Shown: piece by piece, positions 1 to 51,147 of the stretch
Position numbering within the stretch: position 1 is the first letter of the stretch
Layout of the letters: each line of letters starts with the position of its first letter
Source of the DNA: Auanema rhodensis
Taxonomy: Eukaryota; Animalia; Nematoda
Direction of reading: 5' to 3'
NCBI GenBank assembly: GCA_964057225.1
Contig: OZ059900.1
Location: 6,820,001-6,884,000, forward strand
DNA: 64,000 bases
Notes under the pieces: model-generated
What the model saw: only the letters and a program-made list of their open reading frames with translations
What the model was told of the DNA's origin: nothing
The model's database searches: none
Made by a program: the position numbers and the translations under genes

Positions 1-3000
1 CTCCAACTATGAAGATAAAGATGTTTGAATTCCTGTTAGAAGCTTTGATAGTGCATTTATGCAACTATTTATTCGGCAGGAAGCAAACAATATACGGTAA
101 AAATTTAAATTTTAATCGTTTATTTTTCATTAGGACCTTACTATTCTAATTGACTGATATGGAAAATCCACAACATACCCGTTTTCGTTTCGAACAAGAA
201 AGTTCGGAAGACAACTAGCATGAAAAAAGAGATGTGGAAGTTAATTAGTACATGGAAGTTTATTATAAGAATAGTATTCCTTTTGGGAGCTCAGTTACGG
301 TAATGGCAGATAACCTCAAATGGAGATAGATCTAGACTTCTTTCGAAACTCATTTTCTATTCGTTAACAATTTTTTTAGTTATTATTTTGAAGAGTGGAG
401 TATGTTTGACGATGATGTCCTATCAATTGCCTCAGTACCCGATGCTCCCATCTCCAACTATGAAGATAAAGATGTTTGAATTCCTGTTAGAAGCTTTGAT
501 AGTGCATTTATGCAACTATTTATTCGGCAGGAAGCAAACAATATACGGTAAAAATTTAAATTTTAATCGTTTATTTTTCATTAGGACCTTACTATTCTAA
601 TTGACTGATATGGAAAATCCACAACATACCCGTTTTCGTTTCGAACAAGAAAGTTCGGAAGACAACTAGCATGAAAAAAGAGATGTGGAAGTTAATTAGT
701 ACATGGAAGTTTATTATAAGAATAGTATTCCTTTTGGGAGCTCAGTTACGGTAATGGCAGATAACCTCAAATGGAGATAGATCTAGACTTCTTTCGAAAC
801 TCATTTTCTATTCGTTAACAATTTTTTTAGTTATTATTTTGAAGAGTGGAGTATGTTTGACGATGATGTCCTATCAATTGCCTCAGTACCCGATGCTCCC
901 ATCTCCAACTATGAAGATAAAGATGTTTGAATTCCTGTTAGAAGCTTTGATAGTGCATTTATGCAACTATTTATTCGGCAGGAAGCAAACAATATACGGT
1001 AAAAATTTAAATTTTAATCGTTTATTTTTCATTAGGACCTTACTATTCTAATTGACTGATATGGAAAATCCACAACATACCCGTTTTCGTTTCGAACAAG
1101 AAAGTTCGGAAGACAACTAGCATGAAAAAAGAGATGTGGAAGTTAATTAGTACATGGAAGTTTATTATAAGAATAGTATTCCTTTTGGGAGCTCAGTTAC
1201 GGTAATGGCAGATAACCTCAAATGGAGATAGATCTAGACTTCTTTCGAAACTCATTTTCTATTCGTTAACAATTTTTTTAGTTATTATTTTGAAGAGTGG
1301 AGTATGTTTGACGATGATGTCCTATCAATTGCCTCAGTACCCGATGCTCCCATCTCCAACTATGAAGATAAAGATGTTTAAATTCCTGTTAGAAGCTTTG
1401 ATAGTGCATTTATGCAACTATTTATTCGGCAGGAAGCAAACAATATACGGTAAAAATTTAAATTTTAATCGTTTATTTTTCATTAGGACCTTACTATTCT
1501 AATTGACTGATATGGAAAATCCACAACATACCCGTTTTCGTTTCGAACAAGAAAGTTCGGAAGACAACTAGCATGAAAAAAGAGATGTGGAAGTTAATTA
1601 GTACATGGAAGTTTATTATAAGAATAGTATTCCTTTTGGGAGCTCAGTTACGGTAATGGCAGATAACCTCAAATGGAGATAGATCTAGACTTCTTTCGAA
1701 ACTCATTTTCTATTCGTTAACAATTTTTTTAGTTATTATTTTGAAGAGTGGAGTATGTTTGACGATGATGTCCTATCAATTGCCTCAGTACCCGATGCTC
1801 CCATCTCCAACTATGAAGATAAAGATGTTTAAATTCCTGTTAGAAGCTTTGATAGTGCATTTATGCAACTATTTATTCGGCAGGAAGCAAACAATATACG
1901 GTAAAAATTTAAATTTTAATCGTTTTATTTTCATTAGGACCTTACTATTCTAATTGACTGATATGGAAAATCCACAACATACCCGTTTTCGTTTCGAACA
2001 AGAAAGTTCGGAAGACAACTAGCATGAAAAAAGAGATGTGGAAGTTAATTAGTACATGGAAGTTTATTATAAGAATAGTATTCCTTTTGGGAGCTCAGTT
2101 ACGGTAATGGCAGATAACCTCAAATGGAGATAGATCTGGACTTCTTTCGAAACTCATTTTCTATTCGTTAACAATTTTTTTAGTTATTATTTTGAAGAGT
2201 GGAGTATGTTTGACGATGATGTCCTATCAATTGCCTCAGTACCCGATGCTCCCATCTCCAACTATGAAGATAAAGATGTTTAAATTCCTGTTAGAAGCTT
2301 TGATAGTGCATTTATGCAACTATTTATTCGGCAGGAAGCAAACAATATACGGTAAAAATTTAAATTTTAATCGTTTATTTTTCATTAGGACCTTACTATT
2401 CTAATTGACTGATATGGAAAATCCACAACATACCCGTTTTCGTTTCGAACAAGAAAGTTCGGAAGACAACTAGCATGAAAAAAGAGATGTGGAAGTTAAT
2501 TAGTACATGGAAGTTTATTATAAGAATAGTATTCCTTTTGGGAGCTCAGTTACGGTAATGGCAGATAACCTCAAATGGAGATAGATCTGGACTTCTTTCG
2601 AAACTCATTTTCTATTCGTTAACAATTTTTTTAGTTATTATTTTGAAGAGTGGAGTATGTTTGACGATGATGTCCTATCAATTGCCTCAGTACCCGATGC
2701 TCCCATCTCCAACTATGAAGATAAAGATGTTTAAATTCCTGTTAGAAGCTTTGATAGTGCATTTATGCAACTATTTATTCGGCAGGAAGCAAACAATATA
2801 CGGTAAAAATTTAAATTTTAATCGTTTATTTTTCATTAGGACCTTACTATTCTAATTGACTGATATGGAAAATCCACAACATACCCGTTTTCGTTTCGAA
2901 CAAGAAAGTTCGGAAGACAACTAGCATGAAAAAAGAGATGTGGAAGTTAATTAGTACATGGAAGTTTATTATAAGAATAGTATTCCTTTTGGGAGCTCAG

Positions 3001-6000
3001 TTACGGTAATGGCAGATAACCTCAAATGGAGATAGATCTGGACTTCTTTCGAAACTCATTTTCTATTCGTTAACAATTTTTTTAGTTATTATTTTGAAGA
3101 GTGGAGTATGTTTGACGATGATGTCCTATCAATTGCCTCAGTACCCGATGCTCCCATCTCCAACTATGAAGATAAAGATGTTTAAATTCCTGTTAGAAGC
3201 TTTGATAGTGCATTTATGCAACTATTTATTCGGCAGGAAGCAAACAATATACGGTAAAAATTTAAATTTTAATCGTTTATTTTTCATTAGGACCTTACTA
3301 TTCTAATTGACTGATATGGAAAATCCACAACATACCCGTTTTCGTTTCGAACAAGAAAGTTCGGAAGACAACTAGCATGAAAAAAGAGATGTGGAAGTTA
3401 ATTAGTACATGGAAGTTTATTATAAGAATAGTATTCCTTTTGGGAGCTCAGTTACGGTAATGGCAGATAACCTCAAATGGAGATAGATCTGGACTTCTTT
3501 CGAAACTCATTTTCTATTCGTTAACAATTTTTTTAGTTATTATTTTGAAGAGTGGAGTATGTTTGACGATGATGTCCTATCAATTGCCTCAGTACCCGAT
3601 GCTCCCATCTCCAACTATGAAGATAAAGATGTTTAAATTCCTGTTAGAAGCTTTGATAGTGCATTTATGCAACTATTTATTCGGCAGGAAGCAAACAATA
3701 TACGGTAAAAATTTAAATTTTAATCGTTTATTTTTCATTAGGACCTTACTATTCTAATTGACTGATATGGAAAATCCACAACATACCCGTTTTCGTTTCG
3801 AACAAGAAAGTTCGGAAGACAACTAGCATGAAAAAAGAGATGTGGAAGTTAATTAGTACATGGAAGTTTATTATAAGAATAGTATTCCTTTTGGGAGCTC
3901 AGTTACGGTAATGGCAGATAACCTCAAATGGAGATAGATCTGGACTTCTTTCGAAACTCATTTTCTATTCGTTAACAATTTTTTTAGTTATTATTTTGAA
4001 GAGTGGAGTATGTTTGACGATGATGTCCTATCAATTGCCTCAGTACCCGATGCTCCCATCTCCAACTATGAAGATAAAGATGTTTAAATTCCTGTTAGAA
4101 GCTTTGATAGTGCATTTATGCAACTATTTATTCGGCAGGAAGCAAACAATATACGGTAAAAATTTAAATTTTAATCGTTTATTTTTCATTAGGACCTTAC
4201 TATTCTAATTGACTGATATGGAAAATCCACAACATACCCGTTTTCGTTTCGAACAAGAAAGTTCGGAAGACAACTAGCATGAAAAAAGAGATGTGGAAGT
4301 TAATTAGTACATGGAAGTTTATTATAAGAATAGTATTCCTTTTGGGAGCTCAGTTACGGTAATGGCAGATAACCTCAAATGGAGATAGATCTGGACTTCT
4401 TTCGAAACTCATTTTCTATTCGTTAACAATTTTTTTAGTTATTATTTTGAAGAGTGGAGTATGTTTGACGATGATGTCCTATCAATTGCCTCAGTACCCG
4501 ATGCTCCCATCTCCAACTATGAAGATAAAGATGTTTAAATTCCTGTTAGAAGCTTTGATAGTGCATTTATGCAACTATTTATTCGGCAGGAAGCAAACAA
4601 TATACGGTAAAAATTTAAATTTTAATCGTTTATTTTTCATTAGGACCTTACTATTCTAATTGACTGATATGGAAAATCCACAACATACCCGTTTTCGTTT
4701 CGAACAAGAAAGTTCGGAAGACAACTAGCATGAAAAAAGAGATGTGGAAGTTAATTAGTACATGGAAGTTTATTATAAGAATAGTATTCCTTTTGGGAGC
4801 TCAGTTACGGTAATGGCAGATAACCTCAAATGGAGACAGATCTGGACTTCTTTCGAAACTCATTTTCTATTCGTTAACAATTTTTTTAGTTATTATTTTG
4901 AAGAGTGGAGTATGTTTGACGATGATGTCCTATCAATTGCCTCAGTACCCGATGCTCCCATCTCCAACTATGAAGATAAAGATGTTTAAATTCCTGTTAG
5001 AAGCTTTGATAGTGCATTTATGCAACTATTTATTCGGCAGGAAGCAAACAATATACGGTAAAAATTTAAATTTTAATCGTTTATTTTTCATTAGGACCTT
5101 ACTATTCTAATTGACTGATATGGAAAATCCACAACATACCCGTTTTCGTTTCGAACAAGAAAGTTCGGAAGACAACTAGCATGAAAAAAGAGATGTGGAA
5201 GTTAATTAGTACATGGAAGTTTATTATAAGAATAGTATTCCTTTTGGGAGCTCAGTTACGGTAATGGCAGATAACCTCAAATGGAGATAGATCTGGACTT
5301 CTTTCGAAACTCATTTTCTATTCGTTAACAATTTTTTTAGTTATTATTTTGAAGAGTGGAGTATGTTTGACGATGATGTCCTATCAATTGCCTCAGTACC
5401 CGATGCTCCCATCTCCAACTATGAAGATAAAGATGTTTAAATTCCTGTTAGAAGCTTTGATAGTGCATTTATGCAACTATTTATTCGGCAGGAAGCAAAC
5501 AATATACGGTAAAAATTTAAATTTTAATCGTTTATTTTTCATTAGGACCTTACTATTCTAATTGACTGATATGGAAAATCCACAACATACCCGTTTTCGT
5601 TTCGAACAAGAAAGTTCGGAAGACAACTAGCATGAAAAAAGAGATGTGGAAGTTAATTAGTACATGGAAGTTTATTATAAGAATAGTATTCCTTTTGGGA
5701 GCTCAGTTACGGTAATGGCAGATAACCTCAAATGGAGACAGATCTGGACTTCTTTCGAAACTCATTTTCTATTCGTTAACAATTTTTTTAGTTATTATTT
5801 TGAAGAGTGGAGTATGTTTGACGATGATGTCCTATCAATTGCCTCAGTACCCGATGCTCCCATCTCCAACTATGAAGATAAAGATGTTTAAATTCCTGTT
5901 AGAAGCTTTGATAGTGCATTTATGCAACTATTTATTCGGCAGGAAGCAAACAATATACGGTAAAAATTTAAATTTTAATCGTTTATTTTTCATTAGGACC

Positions 6001-9000
6001 TTACTATTCTAATTGACTGATATGGAAAATCCACAACATACCCGTTTTCGTTTCGAACAAGAAAGTTCGGAAGACAACTAGCATGAAAAAAGAGATGTGG
6101 AAGTTAATTAGTACATGGAAGTTTATTATAAGAATAGTATTCCTTTTGGGAGCTCAGTTACGGTAATGGCAGATAACCTCAAATGGAGACAGATCTGGAC
6201 TTCTTTCGAAACTCATTTTCTATTCGTTAACAATTTTTTTAGTTATTATTTTGAAGAGTGGAGTATGTTTGACGATGATGTCCTATCAATTGCCTCAGTA
6301 CCCGATGCTCCCATCTCCAACTATGAAGATAAAGATGTTTAAATTCCTGTTAGAAGCTTTGATAGTGCATTTATGCAACTATTTATTCGGCAGGAAGCAA
6401 ACAATATACGGTAAAAATTTAAATTTTAATCGTTTATTTTTCATTAGGACCTTACTATTCTAATTGACTGATATGGAAAATCCACAACATACCCGTTTTC
6501 GTTTCGAACAAGAAAGTTCGGAAGACAACTAGCATGAAAAAAGAGATGTGGAAGTTAATTAGTACATGGAAGTTTATTATAAGAATAGTATTCCTTTTGG
6601 GAGCTCAGTTACGGTAATGGCAGATAACCTCAAATGGAGACAGATCTGGACTTCTTTCGAAACTCATTTTCTATTCGTTAACAATTTTTTTAGTTATTAT
6701 TTTGAAGAGTGGAGTATGTTTGACGATGATGTCCTATCAATTGCCTCAGTACCCGATGCTCCCATCTCCAACTATGAAGATAAAGATGTTTAAATTCCTG
6801 TTAGAAGCTTTGATAGTGCATTTATGCAACTATTTATTCGGCAGGAAGCAAACAATATACGGTAAAAATTTAAATTTTAATCGTTTATTTTTCATTAGGA
6901 CCTTACTATTCTAATTGACTGATATGGAAAATCCACAACATACCCGTTTTCGTTTCGAACAAGAAAGTTCGGAAGACAACTAGCATGAAAAAAGAGATGT
7001 GGAAGTTAATTAGTACATGGAAGTTTATTATAAGAATAGTATTCCTTTTGGGAGCTCAGTTACGGTAATGGCAGATAACCTCAAATGGAGACAGATCTGG
7101 ACTTCTTTCGAAACTCATTTTCTATTCGTTAACAATTTTTTTAGTTATTATTTTGAAGAGTGGAGTATGTTTGACGATGATGTCCTATCAATTGCCTCAG
7201 TACCCGATGCTCCCATCTCCAACTATGAAGATAAAGATGTTTAAATTCCTGTTAGAAGCTTTGATAGTGCATTTATGCAACTATTTATTCGGCAGGAAGC
7301 AAACAATATACGGTAAAAATTTAAATTTTAATCGTTTATTTTTCATTAGGACCTTACTATTCTAATTGACTGATATGGAAAATCCACAACATACCCGTTT
7401 TCGTTTCGAACAAGAAAGTTCGGAAGACAACTAGCATGAAAAAAGAGATGTGGAAGTTAATTAGTACATGGAAGTTTATTATAAGAATAGTATTCCTTTT
7501 GGGAGCTCAGTTACGGTAATGGCAGATAACCTCAAATGGAGACAGATCTGGACTTCTTTCGAAACTCATTTTCTATTCGTTAACAATTTTTTTAGTTATT
7601 ATTTTGAAGAGTGGAGTATGTTTGACGATGATGTCCTATCAATTGCCTCAGTACCCGATGCTCCCATCTCCAACTATGAAGATAAAGATGTTTAAATTCC
7701 TGTTAGAAGCTTTGATAGTGCATTTATGCAACTATTTATTCGGCAGGAAGCAAACAATATACGGTAAAAATTTAAATTTTAATCGTTTATTTTTCATTAG
7801 GACCTTACTATTCTAATTGACTGATATGGAAAATCCACAACATACCCGTTTTCGTTTCGAACAAGAAAGTTCGGAAGACAACTAGCATGAAAAAAGAGAT
7901 GTGGAAGTTAATTAGTACATGGAAGTTTATTATAAGAATAGTATTCCTTTTGGGAGCTCAGTTACGGTAATGGCAGATAACCTCAAATGGAGATAGATCT
8001 GGACTTCTTTCGAAACTCATTTTCTATTCGTTAACAATTTTTTTAGTTATTATTTTGAAGAGTGGAGTATGTTTGACGATGATGTCCTATCAATTGCCTC
8101 AGTACCCGATGCTCCCATCTCCAACTATGAAGATAAAGATGTTTAAATTCCTGTTAGAAGCTTTGATAGTGCATTTATGCAACTATTTATTCGGCAGGAA
8201 GCAAACAATATACGGTAAAAATTTAAATTTTAATCGTTTATTTTTCATTAGGACCTTACTATTCTAATTGACTGATATGGAAAATCCACAACATACCCGT
8301 TTTCGTTTCGAACAAGAAAGTTCGGAAGACAACTAGCATGAAAAAAGAGATGTGGAAGTTAATTAGTACATGGAAGTTTATTATAAGAATAGTATTCCTT
8401 TTGGGAGCTCAGTTACGGTAATGGCAGATAACCTCAAATGGAGATAGATCTGGACTTCTTTCGAAACTCATTTTCTATTCGTTAACAATTTTTTTAGTTA
8501 TTATTTTGAAGAGTGGAGTATGTTTGACGATGATGTCCTATCAATTGCCTCAGTACCCGATGCTCCCATCTCCAACTATGAAGATAAAGATGTTTAAATT
8601 CCTGTTAGAAGCTTTGATAGTGCATTTATGCAACTATTTATTCGGCAGGAAGCAAACAATATACGGTAAAAATTTAAATTTTAATCGTTTATTTTTCATT
8701 AGGACCTTACTATTCTAATTGACTGATATGGAAAATCCACAACATACCCGTTTTCGTTTCGAACAAGAAAGTTCGGAAGACAACTAGCATGAAAAAAGAG
8801 ATGTGGAAGTTAATTAGTACATGGAAGTTTATTATAAGAATAGTATTCCTTTTGGGAGCTCAGTTACGGTAATGGCAGATAACCTCAAATGGAGACAGAT
8901 CTGGACTTCTTTCGAAACTCATTTTCTATTCGTTAACAATTTTTTTAGTTATTATTTTGAAGAGTGGAGTATGTTTGACGATGATGTCCTATCAATTGCC

Positions 9001-12000
9001 TCAGTACCCGATGCTCCCATCTCCAACTATGAAGATAAAGATGTTTAAATTCCTGTTAGAAGCTTTGATAGTGCATTTATGCAACTATTTATTCGGCAGG
9101 AAGCAAACAATATACGGTAAAAATTTAAATTTTAATCGTTTATTTTTCATTAGGACCTTACTATTCTAATTGACTGATATGGAAAATCCACAACATACCC
9201 GTTTTCGTTTCGAACAAGAAAGTTCGGAAGACAACTAGCATGAAAAAAGAGATGTGGAAGTTAATTAGTACATGGAAGTTTATTATAAGAATAGTATTCC
9301 TTTTGGGAGCTCAGTTACGGTAATGGCAGATAACCTCAAATGGAGATAGATCTGGACTTCTTTCGAAACTCATTTTCTATTCGTTAACAATTTTTTTAGT
9401 TATTATTTTGAAGAGTGGAGTATGTTTGACGATGATGTCCTATCAATTGCCTCAGTACCCGATGCTCCCATCTCCAACTATGAAGATAAAGATGTTTAAA
9501 TTCCTGTTAGAAGCTTTGATAGTGCATTTATGCAACTATTTATTCGGCAGGAAGCAAACAATATACGGTAAAAATTTAAATTTTAATCGTTTATTTTTCA
9601 TTAGGACCTTACTATTCTAATTGACTGATATGGAAAATCCACAACATACCCGTTTTCGTTTCGAACAAGAAAGTTCGGAAGACAACTAGCATGAAAAAAG
9701 AGATGTGGAAGTTAATTAGTACATGGAAGTTTATTATAAGAATAGTATTCCTTTTGGGAGCTCAGTTACGGTAATGGCAGATAACCTCAAATGGAGACAG
9801 ATCTGGACTTCTTTCGAAACTCATTTTCTATTCGTTAACAATTTTTTTAGTTATTATTTTGAAGAGTGGAGTATGTTTGACGATGATGTCCTATCAATTG
9901 CCTCAGTACCCGATGCTCCCATCTCCAACTATGAAGATAAAGATGTTTAAATTCCTGTTAGAAGCTTTGATAGTGCATTTATGCAACTATTTATTCGGCA
10001 GGAAGCAAACAATATACGGTAAAAATTTAAATTTTAATCGTTTATTTTTCATTAGGACCTTACTATTCTAATTGACTGATATGGAAAATCCACAACATAC
10101 CCGTTTTCGTTTCGAACAAGAAAGTTCGGAAGACAACTAGCATGAAAAAAGAGATGTGGAAGTTAATTAGTACATGGAAGTTTATTATAAGAATAGTATT
10201 CCTTTTGGGAGCTCAGTTACGGTAATGGCAGATAACCTCAAATGGAGATAGATCTGGACTTCTTTCGAAACTCATTTTCTATTCGTTAACAATTTTTTTA
10301 GTTATTATTTTGAAGAGTGGAGTATGTTTGACCATGATGTCCTATCAATTGCCTCAGTACCCGATGCTCCCATCTCCAACTATGAAGATAAAGATGTTTA
10401 AATTCCTGTTAGAAGCTTTGATAGTGCATTTATGCAACTATTTATTCGGCAGGAAGCAAACAATATACGGTAAAAATTTAAATTTTAATCGTTTATTTTT
10501 CATTAGGACCTTACTATTCTAATTGACTGATATGGAAAATCCACAACATACCCGTTTTCGTTTCGAACAAGAAAGTTCGGAAGACAACTAGCATGAAAAA
10601 AGAGATGTGGAAGTTAATTAGTACATGGAAGTTTATTATAAGAATAGTATTCCTTTTGGGAGCTCAGTTACGGTAATGGCAGATAACCTCAAATGGAGAT
10701 AGATCTGGACTTCTTTCGAAACTCATTTTCTATTCGTTAACAATTTTTTTAGTTATTATTTTGAAGAGTGGAGTATGTTTGACCATGATGTCCTATCAAT
10801 TGCCTCAGTACCCGATGCTCCCATCTCCAACTATGAAGATAAAGATGTTTAAATTCCTGTTAGAAGCTTTGATAGTGCATTTATGCAACTATTTATTCGG
10901 CAGGAAGCAAACAATATACGGTAAAAATTTAAATTTTAATCGTTTATTTTTCATTAGGACCTTACTATTCTAATTGACTGATATGGAAAATCCACAACAT
11001 ACCCGTTTTCGTTTCGAACAAGAAAGTTCGGAAGACAACTAGCATGAAAAAAGAGATGTGGAAGTTAATTAGTACATGGAAGTTTATTATAAGAATAGTA
11101 TTCCTTTTGGGAGCTCAGTTACGGTAATGGCAGATAACCTCAAATGGAGATAGATCTGGACTTCTTTCGAAACTCATTTTCTATTCGTTAACAATTTTTT
11201 TAGTTATTATTTTGAAGAGTGGAGTATGTTTGACCATGATGTCCTATCAATTGCCTCAGTACCCGATGCTCCCATCTCCAACTATGAAGATAAAGATGTT
11301 TAAATTCCTGTTAGAAGCTTTGATAGTGCATTTATGCAACTATTTATTCGGCAGGAAGCAAACAATATACGGTAAAAATTTAAATTTTAATCGTTTATTT
11401 TTCATTAGGACCTTACTATTCTAATTGACTGATATGGAAAATCCACAACATACCCGTTTTCGTTTCGAACAAGAAAGTTCGGAAGACAACTAGCATGAAA
11501 AAAGAGATGTGGAAGTTAATTAGTACATGGAAGTTTATTATAAGAATAGTATTCCTTTTGGGAGCTCAGTTACGGTAATGGCAGATAACCTCAAATGGAG
11601 ATAGATCTGGACTTCTTTCGAAACTCATTTTCTATTCGTTAACAATTTTTTTAGTTATTATTTTGAAGAGTGGAGTATGTTTGACGATGATGTCCTATCA
11701 ATTGCCTCAGTAGCCGATGCTCCCATCTCCAACTATGAAGATAAAGATGTTTAAATTCCTGTTAGAAGCTTTGATAGTGCATTTATGCAACTATTTATTC
11801 GGCAGGAAGCAAACAATATACGGTAAAAATTTAAATTTTAATCGTTTATTTTTCATTAGGACCTTACTATTCTAATTGACTGATATGGAAAATCCACAAC
11901 ATACCCGTTTTCGTTTCGAACAAGAAAGTTCGGAAGACAACTAGCATGAAAAAAGAGATGTGGAAGTTAATTAGTACATGGAAGTTTATTATAAGAATAG

Positions 12001-15000: not shown

Positions 15001-18000
15001 GTTTATTTTTCATTAGGACCTTACTATTCTAATTGACTGATATGGAAAATCCACAACATACCCGTTTTCGTTTCGAACAAGAAAGTTCGGAAGACAACTA
15101 GCATGAAAAAAGAGATGTGGAAGTTAATTAGTACATGGAAGTTTATTATAAGAATAGTATTCCTTTTGGGAGCTCAGTTACGGTAATGGCAGATAACCTC
15201 AAATGGAGATAGATCTGGACTTCTTTCGAAACTCATTTTCTATTCGTTAACAATTTTTTTAGTTATTATTTTGAAGAGTGGAGTATGTTTGACGATGATG
15301 TCCTATCAATTGCCTCAGTACCCGATGCTCCCATCTCCAACTATGAAGATAAAGATGTTTAAATTTCTGTTAGAAGCTTTGATAGTGCATTTATACAACT
15401 ATTTATTCGGCAGGAAGCAAACAATATACGGTAAAAATTTAAATTTTAATCGTTTATTTTTCATTAGGACCTTACTATTCTAATTGACTGATATGGAAAA
15501 TCCACAACATACCCGTTTTCGTTTCGAACAAGAAAGTTCGGAAGACAACTAGCATGAAAAAAGAGATGTGGAAGTTAATTAGTACATGGAAGTTTATTAT
15601 AAGAATAGTATTCCTTTTGGGAGCTCAGTTACGGTAATGGCAGATAACCTCAAATGGAGATAGATCTGGACTTCTTTCGAAACTCATTTTCTATTCGTTA
15701 ACAATTTTTTTAGTTATTATTTTGAAGAGTGGAGTATGTTTGACGATGATGTCCTATCAATTGCCTCAGTACCCGATGCTCCCATCTCCAACTATGAAGA
15801 TAAAGATGTTTAAATTCCTGTTAGAAGCTTTGATAGTGCATTTATGCAACTATTTATTCGGCAGGAAGCAAACAATATACGGTAAAAATTTAAATTTTAA
15901 TCGTTTATTTTTCATTAGGACCTTACTATTCTAATTGACTGATATGGAAAATCCACAACATACCCGTTTTCGTTTCGAACAAGAAAGTTCGGAAGACAAC
16001 TAGCATGAAAAAAGAGATGTGGAAGTTAATTAGTACATGGAAGTTTATTATAAGAATAGTATTCCTTTTGGGAGCTCAGTTACGGTAATGGCAGATAACC
16101 TCAAATGGAGATAGATCTGGACTTCTTTCGAAACTCATTTTCTATTCGTTAACAATTTTTTTAGTTATTATTTTGAAGAGTGGAGTATGTTTGACGATGA
16201 TGTCCTATCAATTGCCTCAGTACCCGATGCTCCCATCTCCAACTATGAAGATAAAGATGTTTAAATTCCTGTTAGAAGCTTTGATAGTGCATTTATGCAA
16301 CTATTTATTCGGCAGGAAGCAAACAATATACGGTAAAAATTTAAATTTTAATCGTTTATTTTTCATTAGGACCTTACTATTCTAATTGACTGATATGGAA
16401 AATCCACAACATACCCGTTTTCGTTTCGAACAAGAAAGTTCGGAAGACAACTAGCATGAAAAAAGAGATGTGGAAGTTAATTAGTACATGGAAGTTTATT
16501 ATAAGAATAGTATTCCTTTTGGGAGCTCAGTTACGGTAATGGCAGATAACCTCAAATGGAGATAGATCTGGACTTCTTTCGAAACTCATTTTCTATTCGT
16601 TAACAATTTTTTTAGTTATTATTTTGAAGAGTGGAGTATGTTTGACGATGATGTCCTATCAATTGCCTCAGTACCCGATGCTCCCATCTCCAACTATGAA
16701 GATAAAGATGTTTAAATTCCTGTTAGAAGCTTTGATAGTGCATTTATGCAACTATTTATTCGGCAGGAAGCAAACAATATACGGTAAAAATTTAAATTTT
16801 AATCGTTTATTTTTCATTAGGACCTTACTATTCTAATTGACTGATATGGAAAATCCACAACATACCCGTTTTCGTTTCGAACAAGAAAGTTCGGAAGACA
16901 ACTAGCATGAAAAAAGAGATGTGGAAGTTAATTAGTACATGGAAGTTTATTATAAGAATAGTATTCCTTTTGGGAGCTCAGTTACGGTAATGGCAGATAA
17001 CCTCAAATGGAGATAGATCTGGACTTCTTTCGAAACTCATTTTCTATTCGTTAACAATTTTTTTAGTTATTATTTTGAAGAGTGGAGTATGTTTGACGAT
17101 GATGTCCTATCAATTGCCTCAGTACCCGATGCTCCCATCTCCAACTATGAAGATAAAGATGTTTAAATTCCTGTTAGAAGCTTTGATAGTGCATTTATGC
17201 AACTATTTATTCGGCAGGAAGCAAACAATATACGGTAAAAATTTAAATTTTAATCGTTTATTTTTCATTAGGACCTTACTATTCTAATTGACTGATATGG
17301 AAAATCCACAACATACCCGTTTTCGTTTCGAACAAGAAAGTTCGGAAGACAACTAGCATGAAAAAAGAGATGTGGAAGTTAATTAGTACATGGAAGTTTA
17401 TTATAAGAATAGTATTCCTTTTGGGAGCTCAGTTACGGTAATGGCAGATAACCTCAAATGGAGATAGATCTGGACTTCTTTCGAAACTCATTTTCTATTC
17501 GTTAACAATTTTTTTAGTTATTATTTTGAAGAGTGGAGTATGTTTGACGATGATGTCCTATCAATTGCCTCAGTACCCGATGCTCCCATCTCCAACTATG
17601 AAGATAAAGATGTTTAAATTCCTGTTAGAAGCTTTGATAGTGCATTTATGCAACTATTTATTCGGCAGGAAGCAAACAATATACGGTAAAAATTTAAATT
17701 TTAATCGTTTATTTTTCATTAGGACCTTACTATTCTAATTGACTGATATGGAAAATCCACAACATACCCGTTTTCGTTTCGAACAAGAAAGTTCGGAAGA
17801 CAACTAGCATGAAAAAAGAGATGTGGAAGTTAATTAGTACATGGAAGTTTATTATAAGAATAGTATTCCTTTTGGGAGCTCAGTTACGGTAATGGCAGAT
17901 AACCTCAAATGGAGATAGATCTGGACTTCTTTCGAAACTCATTTTCTATTCGTTAACAATTTTTTTAGTTATTATTTTGAAGAGTGGAGTATGTTTGACG

Positions 18001-21000
18001 ATGATGTCCTATCAATTGCCTCAGTACCCGATGCTCCCATCTCCAACTATGAAGATAAAGATGTTTAAATTCCTGTTAGAAGCTTTGATAGTGCATTTAT
18101 GCAACTATTTATTCGGCAGGAAGCAAACAATATACGGTAAAAATTTAAATTTTAATCGTTTATTTTTCATTAGGACCTTACTATTCTAATTGACTGATAT
18201 GGAAAATCCACAACATACCCGTTTTCGTTTCGAACAAGAAAGTTCGGAAGACAACTAGCATGAAAAAAGAGATGTGGAAGTTAATTAGTACATGGAAGTT
18301 TATTATAAGAATAGTATTCCTTTTGGGAGCTCAGTTACGGTAATGGCAGATAACCTCAAATGGAGATAGATCTGGACTTCTTTCGAAACTCATTTTCTAT
18401 TCGTTAACAATTTTTTTAGTTATTATTTTGAAGAGTGGAGTATGTTTGACGATGATGTCCTATCAATTGCCTCAGTACCCGATGCTCCCATCTCCAACTA
18501 TGAAGATAAAGATGTTTAAATTCCTGTTAGAAGCTTTGATAGTGCATTTATGCAACTATTTATTCGGCAGGAAGCAAACAATATACGGTAAAAATTTAAA
18601 TTTTAATCGTTTATTTTTCATTAGGACCTTACTATTCTAATTGACTGATATGGAAAATCCACAACATACCCGTTTTCGTTTCGAACAAGAAAGTTCGGAA
18701 GACAACTAGCATGAAAAAAGAGATGTGGAAGTTAATTAGTACATGGAAGTTTATTATAAGAATAGTATTCCTTTTGGGAGCTCAGTTACGGTAATGGCAG
18801 ATAACCTCAAATGGAGATAGATCTGGACTTCTTTCGAAACTCATTTTCTATTCGTTAACAATTTTTTTAGTTATTATTTTGAAGAGTGGAGTATGTTTGA
18901 CGATGATGTCCTATCAATTGCCTCAGTACCCGATGCTCCCATCTCCAACTATGAAGATAAAGATGTTTATATTCCTGTTAGAAGCTTTGATAGTGCATTT
19001 ATGCAACTATTTATTCGGCAGGAAGCAAACAATATACGGTAAAAATTTAAATTTTAATCGTTTATTTTTCATTAGGACCTTACTATTCTAATTGACTGAT
19101 ATGGAAAATCCACAACATACCCGTTTTCGTTTCGAACAAGAAAGTTCGGAAGACAACTAGCATGAAAAAAGAGATGTGGAAGTTAATTAGTACATGGAAC
19201 TTTATTATAAGAATAGTATTCCTTTTGGGAGCTCAGTTACGGTAATGGCAGATAACCTCAAATGGAGATAGATCTGGACTTCTTTCGAAACTCATTTTCT
19301 ATTCGTTAACAATTTTTTTAGTTATTATTTTGAAGAGTGGAGTATGTTTGACGATGATGTCCTATCAATTGCCTCAGTACCCGATGCTCCCATCTCCAAC
19401 TATGAAGATAAAGATGTTTAAATTCCTGTTAGAAGCTTTGATAGTGCATTTATGCAACTATTTATTCGGCAGGAAGCAAACAATATACGGTAAAAATTTA
19501 AATTTTAATCGTTTATTTTTCATTAGGACCTTACTATTCTAATTGACTGATATGGAAAATCCACAACATACCCGTTTTCGTTTCGAACAAGAAAGTTCGG
19601 AAGACAACTAGCATGAAAAAAGAGATGTGGAAGTTAATTAGTACATGGAACTTTATTATAAGAATAGTATTCCTTTTGGGAGCTCAGTTACGGCAATGGC
19701 AGATAACCTCAAATGGAGATAGATCTGGACTTCTTTCGAAACTCATTTTCTATTCGTTAACAATTTTTTTAGTTATTATTTTGAAGAGTGGAGTATGTTT
19801 GACGATGATGTCCTATCAATTGCCTCAGTACCCGATGCTCCCATCTCCAACTATGAAGATAAAGATGTTTAAATTCCTGTTAGAAGCTTTGATAGTGCAT
19901 TTATGCAACTATTTATTCGGCAGGAAGCAAACAATATACGGTAAAAATTTAAATTTTAATCGTTTATTTTTCATTAGGACCTTACTATTCTAATTGACTG
20001 ATATGGAAAATCCACAACATACCCGTTTTCGTTTCGAACAAGAAAGTTCGGAAGACAACTAGCATGAAAAAAGAGATGTGGAAGTTAATTAGTACATGGA
20101 ACTTTATTATAAGAATAGTATTCCTTTTGGGAGCTCAGTTACGGCAATGGCAGATAACCTCAAATGGAGATAGATCTGGACTTCTTTCGAAACTCATTTT
20201 CTATTCGTTAACAATTTTTTTAGTTATTATTTTGAAGAGTGGAGTATGTTTGACGATGATGTCCTATCAATTGCCTCAGTACCCGATGCTCCCATCTCCA
20301 ACTATGAAGATAAAGATGTTTAAATTCCTGTTAGAAGCTTTGATAGTGCATTTATGCAACTATTTATTCGGCAGGAAGCAAACAATATACGGTAAAAATT
20401 TAAATTTTAATCGTTTATTTTTCATTAGGACCTTACTATTCTAATTGACTGATATGGAAAATCCACAACATACCCGTTTTCGTTTCGAACAAGAAAGTTC
20501 GGAAGACAACTAGCATGAAAAAAGAGATGTGGAAGTTAATTAGTACATGGAACTTTATTATAAGAATAGTATTCCTTTTGGGAGCTCAGTTACGGCAATG
20601 GCAGATAACCTCAAATAGAGATAGATCTGGACTTCTTTCGAAACTCATTTTCTATTCGTTAACAATTTTTTTAGTTATTATTTTGAAGAGTGGAGTATGT
20701 TTGACGATGATGTCCTATCAATTGCCTCAGTACCCGATGCTCCCATCTCCAACTATGAAGATAAAGATGTTTATATTCCTGTTAGAAGCTTTGATAGTGC
20801 ATTTATGCAACTATTTATTCGGCAGGAAGCAAACAATATACGGTAAAAATTTAAATTTTAATCGTTTATTTTTCATTAGGACCTTACTATTCTAATTGAC
20901 TGATATGGAAAATCCACAACATACCCGTTTTCGTTTCGAACAAGAAAGTTCGGAAGACAACTAGCATGAAAAAAGAGATGTGGAAGTTAATTAGTACATG

Positions 21001-24000
21001 GAAGTTTATTATAAGAATAGTATTCCTTTTGGGAGCTCAGTTACGGTAATGGCAGATAACCTCAAATGGAGATAGATCTGGACTTCTTTCGAAACTCATT
21101 TTCTATTCGTTAACAATTTTTTTAGTTATTATTTTGAAGAGTGGAGTATGTTTGACGATGATGTCCTATCAATTGCCTCAGTACCCGATGCTCCCATCTC
21201 CAACTATGAAGATAAAGATGTTTAAATTCCTGTTAGAAGCTTTGATAGTGCATTTATGCAACTATTTATTCGGCAGGAAGCAAACAATATACGGTAAAAA
21301 TTTAAATTTTAATCGTTTATTTTTCATTAGGACCTTACTATTCTAATTGACTGATATGGAAAATCCACAACATACCCGTTTTCGTTTCGAACAAGAAAGT
21401 TCGGAAGACAACTAGCATGAAAAAAGAGATGTGGAAGTTAATTAGTACATGGAAGTTTATTATAAGAATAGTATTCCTTTTGGGAGCTCAGTTACGGTAA
21501 TGGCAGATAACCTCAAATGGAGATAGATCTGGACTTCTTTCGAAACTCATTTTCTATTCGTTAACAATTTTTTTAGTTATTATTTTGAAGAGTGGAGTAT
21601 GTTTGACGATGATGTCCTATCAATTGCCTCAGTACCCGATGCTCCCATCTCCAACTATGAAGATAAAGATGTTTAAATTCCTGTTAGAAGCTTTGATAGT
21701 GCATTTATGCAACTATTTATTCGGCAGGAAGCAAACAATATACGGTAAAAATTTAAATTTTAATCGTTTATTTTTCATTAGGACCTTACTATTCTAATTG
21801 ACTGATATGGAAAATCCACAACATACCCGTTTTCGTTTCGAACAAGAAAGTTCGGAAGACAACTAGCATGAAAAAAGAGATGTGGAAGTTAATTAGTACA
21901 TGGAACTTTATTATAAGAATAGTATTCCTTTTGGGAGCTCAGTTACGGCAATGGCAGATAACCTCAAATAGAGATAGATCTGGACTTCTTTCGAAACTCA
22001 TTTTCTATTCGTTAACAATTTTTTTAGTTATTATTTTGAAGAGTGGAGTATGTTTGACGATGATGTCCTATCAATTGCCTCAGTACCCGATGCTCCCATC
22101 TCCAACTATGAAGATAAAGATGTTTATATTCCTGTTAGAAGCTTTGATAGTGCATTTATGCAACTATTTATTCGGCAGGAAGCAAACAATATACGGTAAA
22201 AATTTAAATTTTAATCGTTTATTTTTCATTAGGACCTTACTATTCTAATTGACTGATATGGAAAATCCACAACATACCCGTTTTCGTTTCGAACAAGAAA
22301 GTTCGGAAGACAACTAGCATGAAAAAAGAGATGTGGAAGTTAATTAGTACATGGAAGTTTATTATAAGAATAGTATTCCTTTTGGGAGCTCAGTTACGGT
22401 AATGGCAGATAACCTCAAATGGAGATAGATCTGGACTTCTTTCGAAACTCATTTTCTATTCGTTAACAATTTTTTTAGTTATTATTTTGAAGAGTGGAGT
22501 ATGTTTGACGATGATGTCCTATCAATTGCCTCAGTACCCGATGCTCCCATCTCCAACTATGAAGATAAAGATGTTTAAATTCCTGTTAGAAGCTTTGATA
22601 GTGCATTTATGCAACTATTTATTCGGCAGGAAGCAAACAATATACGGTAAAAATTTAAATTTTAATCGTTTATTTTTCATTAGGACCTTACTATTCTAAT
22701 TGACTGATATGGAAAATCCACAACATACCCGTTTTCGTTTCGAACAAGAAAGTTCGGAAGACAACTAGCATGAAAAAAGAGATGTGGAAGTTAATTAGTA
22801 CATGGAAGTTTATTATAAGAATAGTATTCCTTTTGGGAGCTCAGTTACGGTAATGGCAGATAACCTCAAATGGAGATAGATCTGGACTTCTTTCGAAACT
22901 CATTTTCTATTCGTTAACAATTTTTTTAGTTATTATTTTGAAGAGTGGAGTATGTTTGACGATGATGTCCTATCAATTGCCTCAGTACCCGATGCTCCCA
23001 TCTCCAACTATGAAGATAAAGATGTTTAAATTCCTGTTAGAAGCTTTGATAGTGCATTTATGCAACTATTTATTCGGCAGGAAGCAAACAATATACGGTA
23101 AAAATTTAAATTTTAATCGTTTATTTTTCATTAGGACCTTACTATTCTAATTGACTGATATGGAAAATCCACAACATACCCGTTTTCGTTTCGAACAAGA
23201 AAGTTCGGAAGACAACTAGCATGAAAAAAGAGATGTGGAAGTTAATTAGTACATGGAAGTTTATTATAAGAATAGTATTCCTTTTGGGAGCTCAGTTACG
23301 GTAATGGCAGATAACCTCAAATGGAGATAGATCTGGACTTCTTTCGAAACTCATTTTCTATTCGTTAACAATTTTTTTAGTTATTATTTTGAAGAGTGGA
23401 GTATGTTTGACGATGATGTCCTATCAATTGCCTCAGTACCCGATGCTCCCATCTCCAACTATGAAGATAAAGATGTTTAAATTCCTGTTAGAAGCTTTGA
23501 TAGTGCATTTATGCAACTATTTATTCGGCAGGAAGCAAACAATATACGGTAAAAATTTAAATTTTAATCGTTTATTTTTCATTAGGACCTTACTATTCTA
23601 ATTGACTGATATGGAAAATCCACAACATACCCGTTTTCGTTTCGAACAAGAAAGTTCGGAAGACAACTAGCATGAAAAAAGAGATGTGGAAGTTAATTAG
23701 TACATGGAAGTTTATTATAAGAATAGTATTCCTTTTGGGAGCTCAGTTACGGTAATGGCAGATAACCTCAAATGGAGATAGATCTGGACTTCTTTCGAAA
23801 CTCATTTTCTATTCGTTAACAATTTTTTTAGTTATTATTTTGAAGAGTGGAGTATGTTTGACGATGATGTCCTATCAATTGCCTCAGTACCCGATGCTCC
23901 CATCTCCAACTATGAAGATAAAGATGTTTAAATTCCTGTTAGAAGCTTTGATAGTGCATTTATGCAACTATTTATTCGGCAGGAAGCAAACAATATACGG

Positions 24001-27000
24001 TAAAAATTTAAATTTTAATCGTTTATTTTTCATTAGGACCTTACTATTCTAATTGACTGATATGGAAAATCCACAACATACCCGTTTTCGTTTCGAACAA
24101 GAAAGTTCGGAAGACAACTAGCATGAAAAAAGAGATGTGGAAGTTAATTAGTACATGGAAGTTTATTATAAGAATAGTATTCCTTTTGGGAGCTCAGTTA
24201 CGGTAATGGCAGATAACCTCAAATGGAGATAGATCTGGACTTCTTTCGAAACTCATTTTCTATTCGTTAACAATTTTTTTAGTTATTATTTTGAAGAGTG
24301 GAGTATGTTTGACGATGATGTCCTATCAATTGCCTCAGTACCCGATGCTCCCATCTCCAACTATGAAGATAAAGATGTTTAAATTTCTGTTAGAAGCTTT
24401 GATAGTGCATTTATACAACTATTTATTCGGCAGGAAGCAAACAATATACGGTAAAAATTTAAATTTTAATCGTTTATTTTTCATTAGGACCTTACTATTC
24501 TAATTGACTGATATGGAAAATCCACAACATACCCGTTTTCGTTTCGAACAAGAAAGTTCGGAAGACAACTAGCATGAAAAAAGAGATGTGGAAGTTAATT
24601 AGTACATGGAAGTTTATTATAAGAATAGTATTCCTTTTGGGAGCTCAGTTACGGTAATGGCAGATAACCTCAAATGGAGATAGATCTGGACTTCTTTCGA
24701 AACTCATTTTCTATTCGTTAACAATTTTTTTAGTTATTATTTTGAAGAGTGGAGTATGTTTGACGATGATGTCCTATCAATTGCCTCAGTACCCGATGCT
24801 CCCATCTCCAACTATGAAGATAAAGATGTTTAAATTCCTGTTAGAAGCTTTGATAGTGCATTTATGCAACTATTTATTCGGCAGGAAGCAAACAATATAC
24901 GGTAAAAATTTAAATTTTAATCGTTTATTTTTCATTAGGACCTTACTATTCTAATTGACTGATATGGAAAATCCACAACATACCCGTTTTCGTTTCGAAC
25001 AAGAAAGTTCGGAAGACAACTAGCATGAAAAAAGAGATGTGGAAGTTAATTAGTACATGGAAGTTTATTATAAGAATAGTATTCCTTTTGGGAGCTCAGT
25101 TACGGTAATGGCAGATAACCTCAAATGGAGATAGATCTGGACTTCTTTCGAAACTCATTTTCTATTCGTTAACAATTTTTTTAGTTATTATTTTGAAGAG
25201 TGGAGTATGTTTGACGATGATGTCCTATCAATTGCCTCAGTACCCGATGCTCCCATCTCCAACTATGAAGATAAAGATGTTTAAATTCCTGTTAGAAGCT
25301 TTGATAGTGCATTTATGCAACTATTTATTCGGCAGGAAGCAAACAATATACGGTAAAAATTTAAATTTTAATCGTTTATTTTTCATTAGGACCTTACTAT
25401 TTTAATTGACTGATATGGAAAATCCACAACATACCCGTTTTCGTTTCGAACAAGAAAGTTCGGAAGACAACTAGCATGAAAAAAGAGATGTGGAAGTTAA
25501 TTAGTACATGGAACTTTATTATAAGAATAGTATTCCTTTTGGGAGCTCAGTTACGGCAATGGCAGATAACCTCAAATGGAGATAGATCTGGACTTCTTTC
25601 GAAACTCATTTTCTATTCGTTAACAATTTTTTTAGTTATTATTTTGAAGAGTGGAGTATGTTTGACGATGATGTCCTATCAATTGCCTCAGTACCCGATG
25701 CTCCCATCTCCAACTATGAAGATAAAGATGTTTAAATTCCTGTTAGAAGCTTTGATAGTGCATTTATGCAACTATTTATTCGGCAGGAAGCAAACAATAT
25801 ACGGTAAAAATTTAAATTTTAATCGTTTATTTTTCATTAGGACCTTACTATTCTAATTGACTGATATGGAATATCCACAACATACCCGTTTTCGTTTCGA
25901 ACAAGAAAGTTCGGAAGACAACTAGCATGAAAAAAGAGATGTGGAAGTTAATTAGTACATGGAACTTTATTATAAGAATAGTATTCCTTTTGGGAGCTCA
26001 GTTACGGCAATGGCAGATAACCTCAAATGGAGATAGATCTGGACTTCTTTCGAAACTCATTTTCTATTCGTTAACAATTTTTTTAGTTATTATTTTGAAG
26101 AGTGGAGTATGTTTGACGATGATGTCCTATCAATTGCCTCAGTACCCGATGCTCCCATCTCCAACTATGAAGATAAAGATGTTTAAATTCCTGTTAGAAG
26201 CTTTGATAGTGCATTTATGCAACTATTTATTCGGCAGGAAGCAAACAATATACGGTAAAAATTTAAATTTTAATCGTTTATTTTTCATTAGGACCTTACT
26301 ATTCTAATTGACTGATATGGAATATCCACAACATACCCGTTTTCGTTTCGAACAAGAAAGTTCGGAAGACAACTAGCATGAAAAAAGAGATGTGGAAGTT
26401 AATTAGTACATGGAACTTTATTATAAGAATAGTATTCCTTTTGGGAGCTCAGTTACGGCAATGGCAGATAACCTCAAATGGAGATAGATCTGGACTTTTT
26501 TCGAAACTCATTTTCTATTCGTTAACAATTTTTTTAGTTATTATTTTGAAGAGTGGAGTATGTTTGACGATGATGTCCTATCAATTGCCTCAGTACCCGA
26601 TGCTCCCATCTCCAACTATGAAGATAAAGATGTTTAAATTCCTGTTAGAAGCTTTGATAGTGCATTTATGCAACTATTTATTCGGCAGGAAGCAAACAAT
26701 ATACGGTAAAAATTTAAATTTTAATCGTTTATTTTTCATTAGGACCTTACTATTTTAATTGACTGATATGGAAAATCCACAACATACCCGTTTTCGTTTC
26801 GAACAAGAAAGTTCGGAAGACAACTAGCATGAAAAAAGAGATGTGGAAGTTAATTAGTACATGGAACTTTATTATAAGAATAGTATTCCTTTTGGGAGCT
26901 CAGTTACGGCAATGGCAGATAACCTCAAATGGAGATAGATCTGGACTTCTTTCGAAACTCATTTTCTATTCGTTAACAATTTTTTTAGTTATTATTTTGA

Positions 27001-29777
27001 AGAGTGGAGTATGTTTGACGATGATGTCCTATCAATTGCCTCAGTACCCGATGCTCCCATCTCCAACTATGAAGATAAAGATGTTTAAATTCCTGTTAGA
27101 AGCTTTGATAGTGCATTTATGCAACTATTTATTCGGCAGGAAGCAAACAATATACGGTAAAAATTTAAATTTTAATCGTTTATTTTTCATTAGGACCTTA
27201 CTATTCCAATTGACTGATATGGAAAATCCACAACATACCCGTTTTCGTTTCGAACAAGAAAGTTCGGAAGACAACTAGCATGAAAAAAGAGATGTGGAAG
27301 TTAATTAGTACATGGAACTTTATTATAAGAATAGTATTCCTTTTGGGAGCTCAGTTACGGCAATGGCAGATAACCTCAAATGGAGATAGATCTGGACTTC
27401 TTTCGAAACTCATTTTCTATTCGTTAACAATTTTTTTAGTTATTATTTTGAAGAGTGGAGTATGTTTGACGATGATGTCCTATCAATTGCCTCAGTACCC
27501 GATGCTCCCATCTCCAACTATGAAGATAAAGATGTTTAAATTCCTGTTAGAAGCTTTGATAGTGCATTTATGCAACTATTTATTCGGCAGGAAGCAAACA
27601 ATATACGGTAAAAATTTAAATTTTAATCGTTTATTTTTCATTAGGACCTTACTATTCTAATTGACTGATATGGAATATCCACAACATACCCGTTTTCGTT
27701 TCGAACAAGAAAGTTCGGAAGACAACTAGCATGAAAAAAGAGATGTGGAAGTTAATTAGTACATGGAACTTTATTATAAGAATAGTATTCCTTTTGGGAG
27801 CTCAGTTACGGCAATGGCAGATAACCTCAAATGGAGATAGATCTGGACTTCTTTCGAAACTCATTTTCTATTCGTTAACAATTTTTTTAGTTATTATTTT
27901 GAAGAGTGGAGTATGTTTGACGATGATGTCCTATCAATTGCCTCAGTACCCGATGCTCCCATCTCCAACTATGAAGATAAAGATGTTTAAATTCCTGTTA
28001 GAAGCTTTGATAGTGCATTTATGCAACTATTTATTCGGCAGGAAGCAAACAATATACGGTAAAAATTTAAATTTTAATCGTTTATTTTTCATTAGGACCT
28101 TACTATTCTAATTGACTGATATGGAAAATCCACAACATACCCGTTTTCGTTTCGAACAAGAAAGTTCGGAAGACAACTAGCATGAAAAAAGAGATGTGGA
28201 AGTTAATTAGTACATGGAAGTTTATTATAAGAATAGTATTCCTTTTGGGAGCTCAGTTACGGTAATGGCAGATAACCTCAAATGGAGATAGATCTGGACT
28301 TCTTTCGAAACTCATTTTCTATTCGTTAACAATTTTTTTAGTTATTATTTTGAAGAGTGGAGTATGTTTGACCATGATGTCCTATCAATTGCCTCAGTAC
28401 CCGATGCTCCCATCTCCAACTATGAAGATAAAGATGTTTAAATTCCTGTTAGAAGCTTTGATAGTGCATTTATGCAACTATTTATTCGGCAGGAAGCAAA
28501 CAATATACGGTAAAAATTTAAATTTTAATCGTTTATTTTTTATTAGGACCTTACTATTCTAATTGACTGATATGGAAAATCCACAACATACCCGTTTTCG
28601 TTTCGAACAAGAAAGTTCGGAAGACAACTAGCATGAAAAAAGAGATGTGGAAGTTAATTAGTACATGGAAGTTTATTATAAGAATAGTATTCCTTTTGGG
28701 AGCTCAGTTACGGTAATGGCAGATAACCTCAAATGGAGATAGATCTGGACTTCTTTCGAAACTCATTTTCTATTCGTTAACAATTTTTTTAGTTATTATT
28801 TTGAAGAGTGGAATATGTTTGACGATGATGTCCTATCAATTGCCTCAGTACCCGATGCTCCCATCTCCAACTATGAAGATAAAGATGTTTAAATTTCTGT
28901 TAGAAGCTTTGATAGTCCATTTATGCAACTATTTATTCGGCAGGAAGCAAACAATATACGGTAAAAATTTAAATTTTAATCGTTTATTTTTCATTAGGAC
29001 CTTACTATTCTAATTGACTGATATGGAAAATCCACAACATACCCGTTTTCGTTTCGAACAAGAAAGTTCGGAAGACAACTAGCATGAAAAAAGAGATGTG
29101 GAAGTTAATTAGTACATGGAAGTTTATTATAAGAATAGTATTCCTTTTGGGAGCTCAGTTACGGTAATGGCAGATAACCTCAAATGGAGATAGATCTGGA
29201 CTTCTTTCGAAACTCATTTTCTATTCGTTAACAATTTTTTTAGTTATTATTTTGAAGAGTGGAGTATGTTTGACCATGATGTCCTATCAATTGCCTCAGT
29301 ACCCGATGCTCCCATCTCCAACTATGAAGATAAAGATGTTTAAATTCCTGTTAGAAGCTTTGATAGTGCATTTATGCAACTATTTATTCGGCAGGAAGCA
29401 AACAATATACGGTAAAAATTTAAATTTTAATCGTTTATTTTTCATTAGGACCTTACTATTCTAATTGACTGATATGGAAAATCCACAACATACCCGTTTT
29501 CGTTTCGAACAAGAAAGTTCGGAAGACAACTAGCATGAAAAAAGAGATGTGGAAGTTAATTAGTACATGGAACTTTATTATAAGAATAGTATTCCTTTTG
29601 GGAGCTCAGTTACGGTAATGGCAGATAACCTCAAATGGAGATAGATCTGGACTTCTTTCGAAACTCATTTTCTATTCGTTAACAATTTTTTTAGTTATTA
29701 TTTTGAAGAGTGGAGTATGTTTGACGATGATGTCCTATCAATTGCCTCAGTACCCGATGCTCCCATCTTTAACTATG
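1..29777 (+). repeat. 451-bp tandem satellite array, ~66 copies, open at the left window edge
   Basis: Near-identical ORF starts recur at 388+451n out to 29252 (64 x 451), so there are no net indels. Only scattered substitutions between copies. The last partial copy diverges at ~29768-29777 (cccatctttaactatgg). Confidence 0.99.
396..708 (+). pseudogene. USP7: USP7/MATH-33-like deubiquitinase gene fragment inside each 451-bp unit (first full copy shown): 2 exons + 37-nt intron
   Basis: Exon 396-547, intron 548-584 (gtaaaa...ttcattag), exon 585-708 translate to WSMFDDDVLSIASVPDAPISNYEDKDV*IPVRSFDSAFMQLFIRQEANNIR/TLLF*LTDMENPQHTRFRFEQESSEDN*HEKRDVEVN*YMEV. This is colinear with the USP7 catalytic-domain end as recalled (WCKFDDDVVSR...NYGG...NAYMLVYIR...VTDHDIPQQL..RLQEE...EAHLYMQV). 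Four in-frame stops. Confidence 0.8.
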
Positions 29778-29864
29778 GAGACACTGCTCAAGGTTCACAA
29801 AGGTATGATAACATATCATATGATAATTTAAAATGGAGGAAGAAGTTTCAAAAATTGTGTATGT

Positions 29865-30401: not shown

Positions 30402-30580
30402 GCCCTCTGCCAGCACAACTTTGCGCCAACTTGTATATTTCTCTACGGAAATAGAGAACAACAGATTATGGAATATCATGCTAAGAAGGAAGATCAGTTG
30501 AATCACCTTAGAGGATGGGGCTTTTACCACTCACTATATCAATCAGATTCCATAAAGTAAATGTCAACAACAAATGATAC

Positions 30581-51103: not shown

Positions 51104-51108
<5 letters not shown>

Positions 51109-51144: not shown

Positions 51145-51147
<3 letters not shown>

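Follow-up and report, generated by a model that had tools for sequence, protein, structure and literature searches.

Satellite DNAs that derive from ribosomal DNA spacers and from transposons are well known (PMC5615363). In New World monkeys, the satellite CapA derives from an intron of NOS1AP, has a unit of ~1.5 kb and accounts for up to ~5% of the genome (PMC7210261, citing Valeri et al. 2018). In Drosophila melanogaster, Suppressor of Stellate (Su(Ste)), which is derived from CK2beta-tes, consists of tandem, mutation-damaged gene copies with exon-intron structure, and its transposon-driven antisense transcription yields abundant Piwi-interacting RNAs (piRNAs) against the closely similar Stellate genes (PMC7874207). 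The RS447 megasatellite (USP17/DUB3) has a 4.7-kb unit, most copies of which hold an intact open reading frame of 1593 bp, and it makes an enzyme (PMC2874809). In this paper we describe sat1, a 451-bp satellite that carries a decayed piece of a gene for the deubiquitinase USP7, in a stretch of 64,000 nucleotides from the nematode Auanema rhodensis (GCA_964057225.1, contig OZ059900.1, positions 6,820,001 to 6,884,000, forward strand), the whole of which is referred to here as the window. The closest Caenorhabditis elegans ortholog of USP7 is MATH-33 (PMC8527565), and the catalytic triad of USP7 is Cys223-His464-Asp481 (PMC12191434).

Like CapA, sat1 is a satellite drawn from single-copy gene DNA by way of duplication together with unequal crossing-over; unlike CapA, which holds intron sequence only, its unit is exon-intron-exon, and its array is local, extends over tens of kb and has sibling arrays next to it (PMC7210261). 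It shares with Su(Ste) the tandem arrangement of damaged gene copies that keep exon-intron structure, but sat1 is a fragment only, with neither promoter nor transposon in the unit and with almost no RNA (PMC7874207). Like RS447 it is a tandem repeat built on deubiquitinase sequence, but in place of the intact open reading frame it has a stop-ridden piece of ~93 codons (PMC2874809), which comes from where the catalytic domain of USP7/MATH-33 ends and from its connector helix (PMC8527565). The 451-bp unit lies within the 167-504-nt range given for the tandem-repeat blocks of A. rhodense in a preprint; the blocks named there are large and mostly eliminated, and its main text makes no mention of satellites derived from USP7 or from protein genes (10.64898/2026.08.27.747507). 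We found no report of a USP7-derived satellite in the literature. The explanation that we favour, with a probability of roughly 0.8, is that sat1 is satellite DNA of an ordinary kind, in which a gene fragment was duplicated, decayed to a dead state and was then amplified; this explanation rests on homology to USP7, retention of introns, stops shared by the units, variants shared between neighbouring units, and near-silence in RNA.

The array and the parts of its unit, in the coordinates of the last full unit, are as follows; exon A of copy 46, which served as a search query, is added.

1 to 29781, + strand: satellite sat1, at least 66 head-to-tail copies of 451 bp, with the left end beyond the window edge.
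29217 to 29259, + strand: remnant (~43 nt) of an upstream intron of the parent gene, acceptor kept and donor lost, as seen by comparing DNA and RNA contigs of the parent; it repeats at 29668-29710.
29260 to 29411, + strand: exon A piece (152 nt), the end of the USP catalytic domain, from WxxFDD with the equivalent of Asp481 to an AYMLVY-like motif; one stop at 29341-29343.
29412 to 29448, + strand: 37-nt intron, GT..AG intact in 65/65 full units.
29449 to 29575, + strand: exon B piece, the USP7 connector helix to YMEV; stops at 29462, 29531 and 29561.
29576 to 29658, + strand: distal ~80 nt of the unit, usually with a fifth stop at 29642-29644; no consistent USP7 match.
20691 to 20840, + strand: exon A of copy 46, stop-free, as it is in copies 42, 46 and 49 only.

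Exon A begins with WSMFDDDV and reads to ...RSFDSAFMQLFIRQEANNIR, and exon B carries LTDMENPQH, FRFEQE and YMEV. Together the exon pieces amount to ~93 codons and correspond to human residues ~477-570. All of the motifs quoted in a preliminary description of this DNA, and the 37-nt GT-AG intron, were recovered, the piece having ~93 codons against the ~92 given there. The distal ~80 nt are followed by an AT-rich stretch that ends in AG directly before the next Trp codon.

Exons A and B were searched and scored separately, and the query for exon A was the 50 residues of copy 46, which is naturally free of stops. Among 177,635 PDB sequences the sole match to this query was USP7 (E 0.034; 46 ungapped residues, human 477-522). 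Reference USP7 genes came from metagenomes, where a general DNA pattern gave 26 animal-type loci, none of them judged to be human, and they were confirmed by Pfam to hold MATH, UCH, USP7_ICP0_bdg and USP7_C2; a nematode-style DNA pattern gave no USP7 locus in the metagenomes. Against one invertebrate USP7 among these (L017), ungapped, exon A aligned at offset 0 from the Trp of WxxFDD, with 15/46 residues identical and a score of 73; for exon B the offset was 49, with 11/42 residues identical and a score of 49. Each score exceeded those of 1000/1000 shuffles (p ~0.001 each), and the other five frames scored 15 or less. Two further loci (L010 and L004) gave the two exons in the same order, a fourth (L018) backed exon A only, and tblastn joined the exon A and exon B pieces on L017 (E 5e-4). 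The identification of the monomer with USP7/math-33 made in the preliminary description is upheld by this ordered homology of both exons to the end of a USP domain and the USP7 connector helix.

Although exon A matched USP7 in PDB, Pfam, including UCH, gave no match with exon A alone. In a phmmer search of 1.8 billion representatives no USP7 was found, and its three matches were rejected as homologues since all are unrelated repetitive proteins with summed scores. A word-indexed homologue search gave no candidate, a blank without weight since it covers proteins of 28-88 amino acids only. ESM Atlas returned only MoeA_C look-alikes below 0.8, which were also rejected. Pfam, the very large searches and the Atlas were of no help with a query so short and decayed. 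No search gave a match to a transposon, and an Rfam search of sat1 gave no family. We also considered, and rejected, a USP7 origin for three further stretches: the distal 80 nt of the unit, what follows the A/G repeat, and the spacer at 29782-30580. They gave no PDB match and no consistent shuffle-tested match.

Contigs of two RNA-like runs (X12 and X13) and two DNA runs (X5 and X7) were compared with positions 29331-29960 at a matching cut-off of 80% identity. This stretch is present in 14 runs, three of them guessed to be RNA; the RNA label of X12 and X13 is one such guess. X12 and X13 each hold a USP7-like contig of ~4 kb, at depths of 72 and 60, which matches 29709-29739 (27/31, 4 differences) and 29455-29526 (62/72, 10 differences). 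Between these two patches the transcript has 123 letters and the array 166 unspliced or 129 without the 37-nt intron, a gap that would fit splicing together with a two-codon difference. The joint table of DNA run X7 has the same joint, without separate spacing. In DNA run X5, a contig has 169 letters ahead of 29455 in which the start of exon A is not matched, a layout that fits an intron within the gene. The RNA contigs, upstream of the Trp codon, continue into a different exon with an open frame that ends ...KAKPK, and the match to the array starts at 29709. The X7 DNA contig of the parent, which matches 29684-29739, has instead a GT-starting insert between the end of the ...KAKPK exon and the Trp codon, and the last 27 letters of this insert match 29684-29710. 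The presence of this insert in the DNA but not the RNA contigs indicates that the long contigs do come from spliced RNA and that the unit holds most of a second intron of ~43 nt. Many animal USP7 genes have an acceptor right before this Trp codon.

Both introns kept in the unit are therefore missing from the RNA contigs of the parent, the 37-nt intron by spacing and the upstream one by the loose ends of DNA versus RNA. From the ordered exon homology, the transcript spacing that fits loss of an intron, and the upstream remnant kept by the DNA contig only, an origin by genomic duplication of an intron-containing piece of USP7, not by retroposition, is well supported, as had been proposed from the monomer alone. 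The frame of the parent transcript is open at the positions of the array stops; at 29462 the transcript has C where the array has a stop, which makes that stop a derived state, and it continues ...EESRRKKEKMEA at the next stop of the array. Identity of sat1 to the parent is 86-87% in the two patches, below the cut-off elsewhere and ~80% overall, and set against 99.6% within the array this indicates that the fragment had died long before the array expanded to its present form.

The number of stops per sat1 unit in the USP7 frame is 4-6, and 0/65 full units are clean. Exon A has one stop in 62/65 units, and exon B has three in 64/65 and two in the remaining unit. Stop-removing variants 101A>T, 220T>C and 400T>C occur in copies 42, 46 and 49 (18870, 20674, 22027), copy 60 (26988) and copies 10-21. 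Of these, 220T>C is the state of the parent and of a sister array alike, and could be either a relic or a tract of conversion. Segregating exon variants number 9 replacement to 2 silent against sites at ~4.2 to 1, small numbers that are as expected without coding constraint. The unit includes, of the triad, the Asp481 region only, with the catalytic Cys and His outside it, and it has no MATH domain, Cys/His boxes, UBL domains or open frame. A working enzyme cannot be made from the array. The spliced reading of ~92 codons in the preliminary description stands as far as codons and motifs go, but it left out that the frame is broken by stops in every unit; likewise its term "spliceable" holds for the GT and AG dinucleotides, which survive in all full units, but no spliced array RNA was seen in the RNA-like runs.

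Tandem Repeats Finder placed sat1 at 1-29781 as one array with a period of 451, 66.0 copies and 99% matches, in agreement with the period reported earlier and four nucleotides beyond the span of 1-29777 given there. The 65 full units show no variation in length, at 451 bp each, and differ from the consensus at 0-4 positions. Pairs of them are on average 99.6% identical; the consensus itself occurs in 27 units, and there are 21 different sequences among the units. Variants are shared between adjacent units (lag 1) at 0.42 versus 0.09 by chance (p 0.0005); the excess extends over lags 1-4 (p 0.0005-0.002) and is gone at lag 8 or more, a pattern expected of local unequal exchange or slippage. Sat1 is, in these respects, a satellite in the usual sense: a long, near-identical, head-to-tail array that is locally homogenised and non-coding.

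Related arrays and the sequence between them are listed below.

29782 to 30580, + strand: spacer between the arrays, unique and A-rich, with no significant USP7 match.
30581 to 41040, + strand: related satellite sat2, units of 131 and 292 bp in mixed order, with the 37-nt intron as in sat1.

Over 276 aligned columns sat2 and sat1 have 75% identity (26/37 in the intron), and the SAYMLVY motif of sat2 is better kept than that of sat1. By eye, the two satellites have in common a broken upstream donor region relative to the loose end of the parent, which points to one dead ancestor. The last unit of sat2 (to ~41040), which reads FIDTDIPQD, appears to be less strongly homogenised, and the higher-order arrangement is irregular. 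A sister satellite outside the window was assembled as a cyclic contig with a unit of 431 bp that is ~95% like sat1 over 200 nt; it has a DNA-encoded deletion of 48 nt and a replaced segment, and it retains the intron in the RNA-like runs.

From these results we propose the following sequence of events. A genomic piece of USP7/math-33, made up of an intron tail, exon A, the 37-nt intron and the start of exon B, would have been copied to a place near the gene and would have become attached to ~80 nt of different sequence. The shared lesions indicate that, with no coding selection acting on it, this copy then fell to ~80% identity; stops arose in it and a splice donor was lost, all before the expansion. 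One decayed unit would then have been amplified and homogenised to at least 66 copies, a pattern visible in the array, for which local unequal exchange or slippage is the probable mechanism. The sibling arrays, sat2 and the 431-bp sister, may have grown from relatives of the same dead piece, in an order that we can only suggest.

Sat1 is essentially silent in the RNA-like data seen. Sat1-specific contigs have a depth of 3.1 in X12 and are absent in X13, against the 72 and 60 of the parent transcript, and no joint skipping 29412-29448 was found in the contigs of the RNA-like runs. In DNA run X7 the sat1 contigs reach ~1800 against 23 for the parent-gene contig (~78-fold). The 431-bp sister has depths of 32 and 26 in the RNA-like runs and is three times rarer than sat1 in DNA, a reversal that DNA carry-over cannot explain, so that the sister seems weakly transcribed; we treat this as a lead only. 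Weak transcription of the sister itself or read-through from the live gene are both possible sources of its RNA.

Other observations concern the flanks of the arrays. In X5 and X7 alike, the spacer at 29786-29960 has a depth of 0.36-0.45x that of the contig of the parent gene, for which AT bias, an extra gene copy and partial elimination are candidate causes. One X7 DNA contig shares just the 36 letters at 29783-29818 with the right flank of the array and differs on both sides. The last sat1 unit ends with the sister's variant (NYGD), and at this edge a short shared sequence may join the array to another locus. A smaller A-rich repeat occupies 29979-30400. Beyond sat2, a 6-kb purine-rich minisatellite of degenerate A/G runs lies at 41134-47160 (GC skew 1.0 over 42-46 kb), and with more than 120 stops in each + frame it is not coding. 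Genes resume at ~47 kb of the window. At 49512-50096 on the + strand, a helical-looking frame of 194 codons without a Pfam match is likely to be the final exon of a small gene with introns; at 50568-53892 a single 3.3-kb palindrome with arms 96.8% identical and its centre near 52230 looks like a foldback or MITE-type (miniature inverted-repeat) element; and at 54417-58682 on the - strand is a stop-free frame of 1421 codons with no Pfam match and no exact protein record.

Several points weigh against an origin from a dead fragment. All units have kept their splice dinucleotides, and splicing leaves a length of 414 that maintains the frame, which a neutral model attributes to chance (1 in 3). 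The depth of contigs is a rough guide, strandless and blind to small RNAs; the label of X12 and X13 as RNA is guessed, though their long contigs are without an intron that is present in the DNA contig; and the identity of the parent rests on short matched patches and on 30-letter loose ends read by eye. The first two of these would suit a hidden coding repeat, in which a tandem exon cassette of an expressed gene is spliced of its 37-nt intron to give a repeat of 138 codons, since 451-37 = 414 is in frame from unit to unit and GT-AG is intact throughout. The 4-6 stops in 65/65 units refute a continuous reading frame, however, no spliced joint and next to no RNA were seen, and the 431-bp sister is out of frame after splicing (394 nt); we consider this explanation highly improbable. 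A chance resemblance to USP7, or a transposon origin, could draw on the modest single-exon scores (PDB E 0.034) and on the lack of USP7 in Pfam, both very large searches and the Atlas, but two exons in the right order and spacing at p ~0.001 each, nucleotide matches to a spliced 4-kb transcript, the SAYMLVY retained by sat2 and the missing transposon match leave it with hardly any likelihood. The arrays might instead have a structural role, as germline-restricted DNA that is eliminated or as a pairing or centromere-like landmark, their gene origin being incidental. A. rhodense does eliminate ~61% of its genome, mostly tandem repeats with units of 167-504 nt (10.64898/2026.08.27.747507), and the unique right-hand spacer has the low depth described above in both DNA runs. 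Sat1 in X7, however, at ~78x the parent-gene contig, is near its copy number and would not fit the ~eightfold drop of eliminated DNA; the window has no telomere repeat, the right end of the array has no good 29-nt palindrome (searched without the letters of the motif), and genes resume at ~47 kb. Array depth relative to the gene fits somatic retention better than elimination, but the depth of the spacer is low; a structural role seems very unlikely.

The preliminary description had also suggested that the satellite, if transcribed, could be a large source or sink of small RNAs related to the parent gene. Where it could be tested this idea was not supported, as the array has a depth of ~3 or none against 60-72 and is ~86% identical to the parent at best. 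A regulatory repeat like Su(Ste), in which transcription of the arrays would tune the USP7 gene nearby by way of small RNAs or a domain of heterochromatin, finds some encouragement in the unspliced RNA of the 431-bp sister, which is ~10x that of sat1 in both RNA-like runs although the sister is rarer in DNA, and in the known cases of gene-derived repeats that silence their relatives (PMC7874207). On the other side, sat1 itself is nearly absent from RNA; with a parent match of ~86% at best, perfect matches of 21-22 nt should be few; and Drosophila CK2beta-tes, at ~70% identity, escapes the Su(Ste) piRNAs (PMC7874207). An effect on chromatin in cis requires no homology and would leave the gene-derived sequence unexplained. 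A small-RNA role at ~80% identity to the parent is unlikely, and so is a regulatory repeat of this kind. It is still more doubtful that the USP7-derived arrays form a lineage-specific regulator, in which the transcribed 431-bp sister would give small or read-through RNA that sets chromatin on all of the arrays and tunes the essential USP7 gene that they adjoin.

Our preferred reading of sat1 as an amplified dead fragment involves no new mechanism unless a regulatory role is shown, but it makes sat1 an unusually traceable gene-derived satellite. The origins of satellites are usually untraceable, and here the unit can be mapped onto the exons and introns of a conserved single-copy gene, of which a parent transcript survives together with at least three sibling arrays of different ages (units of sat1 are 99.6% identical to one another, and sat1 has ~80% identity with the parent, ~95% with the sister and ~75% with sat2). 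As an example of the order "duplicate, decay, amplify" it is a neat one. In practice, annotation of USP7 or the design of RNA interference (RNAi) experiments in Auanema rhodensis may cross-match these repeats.

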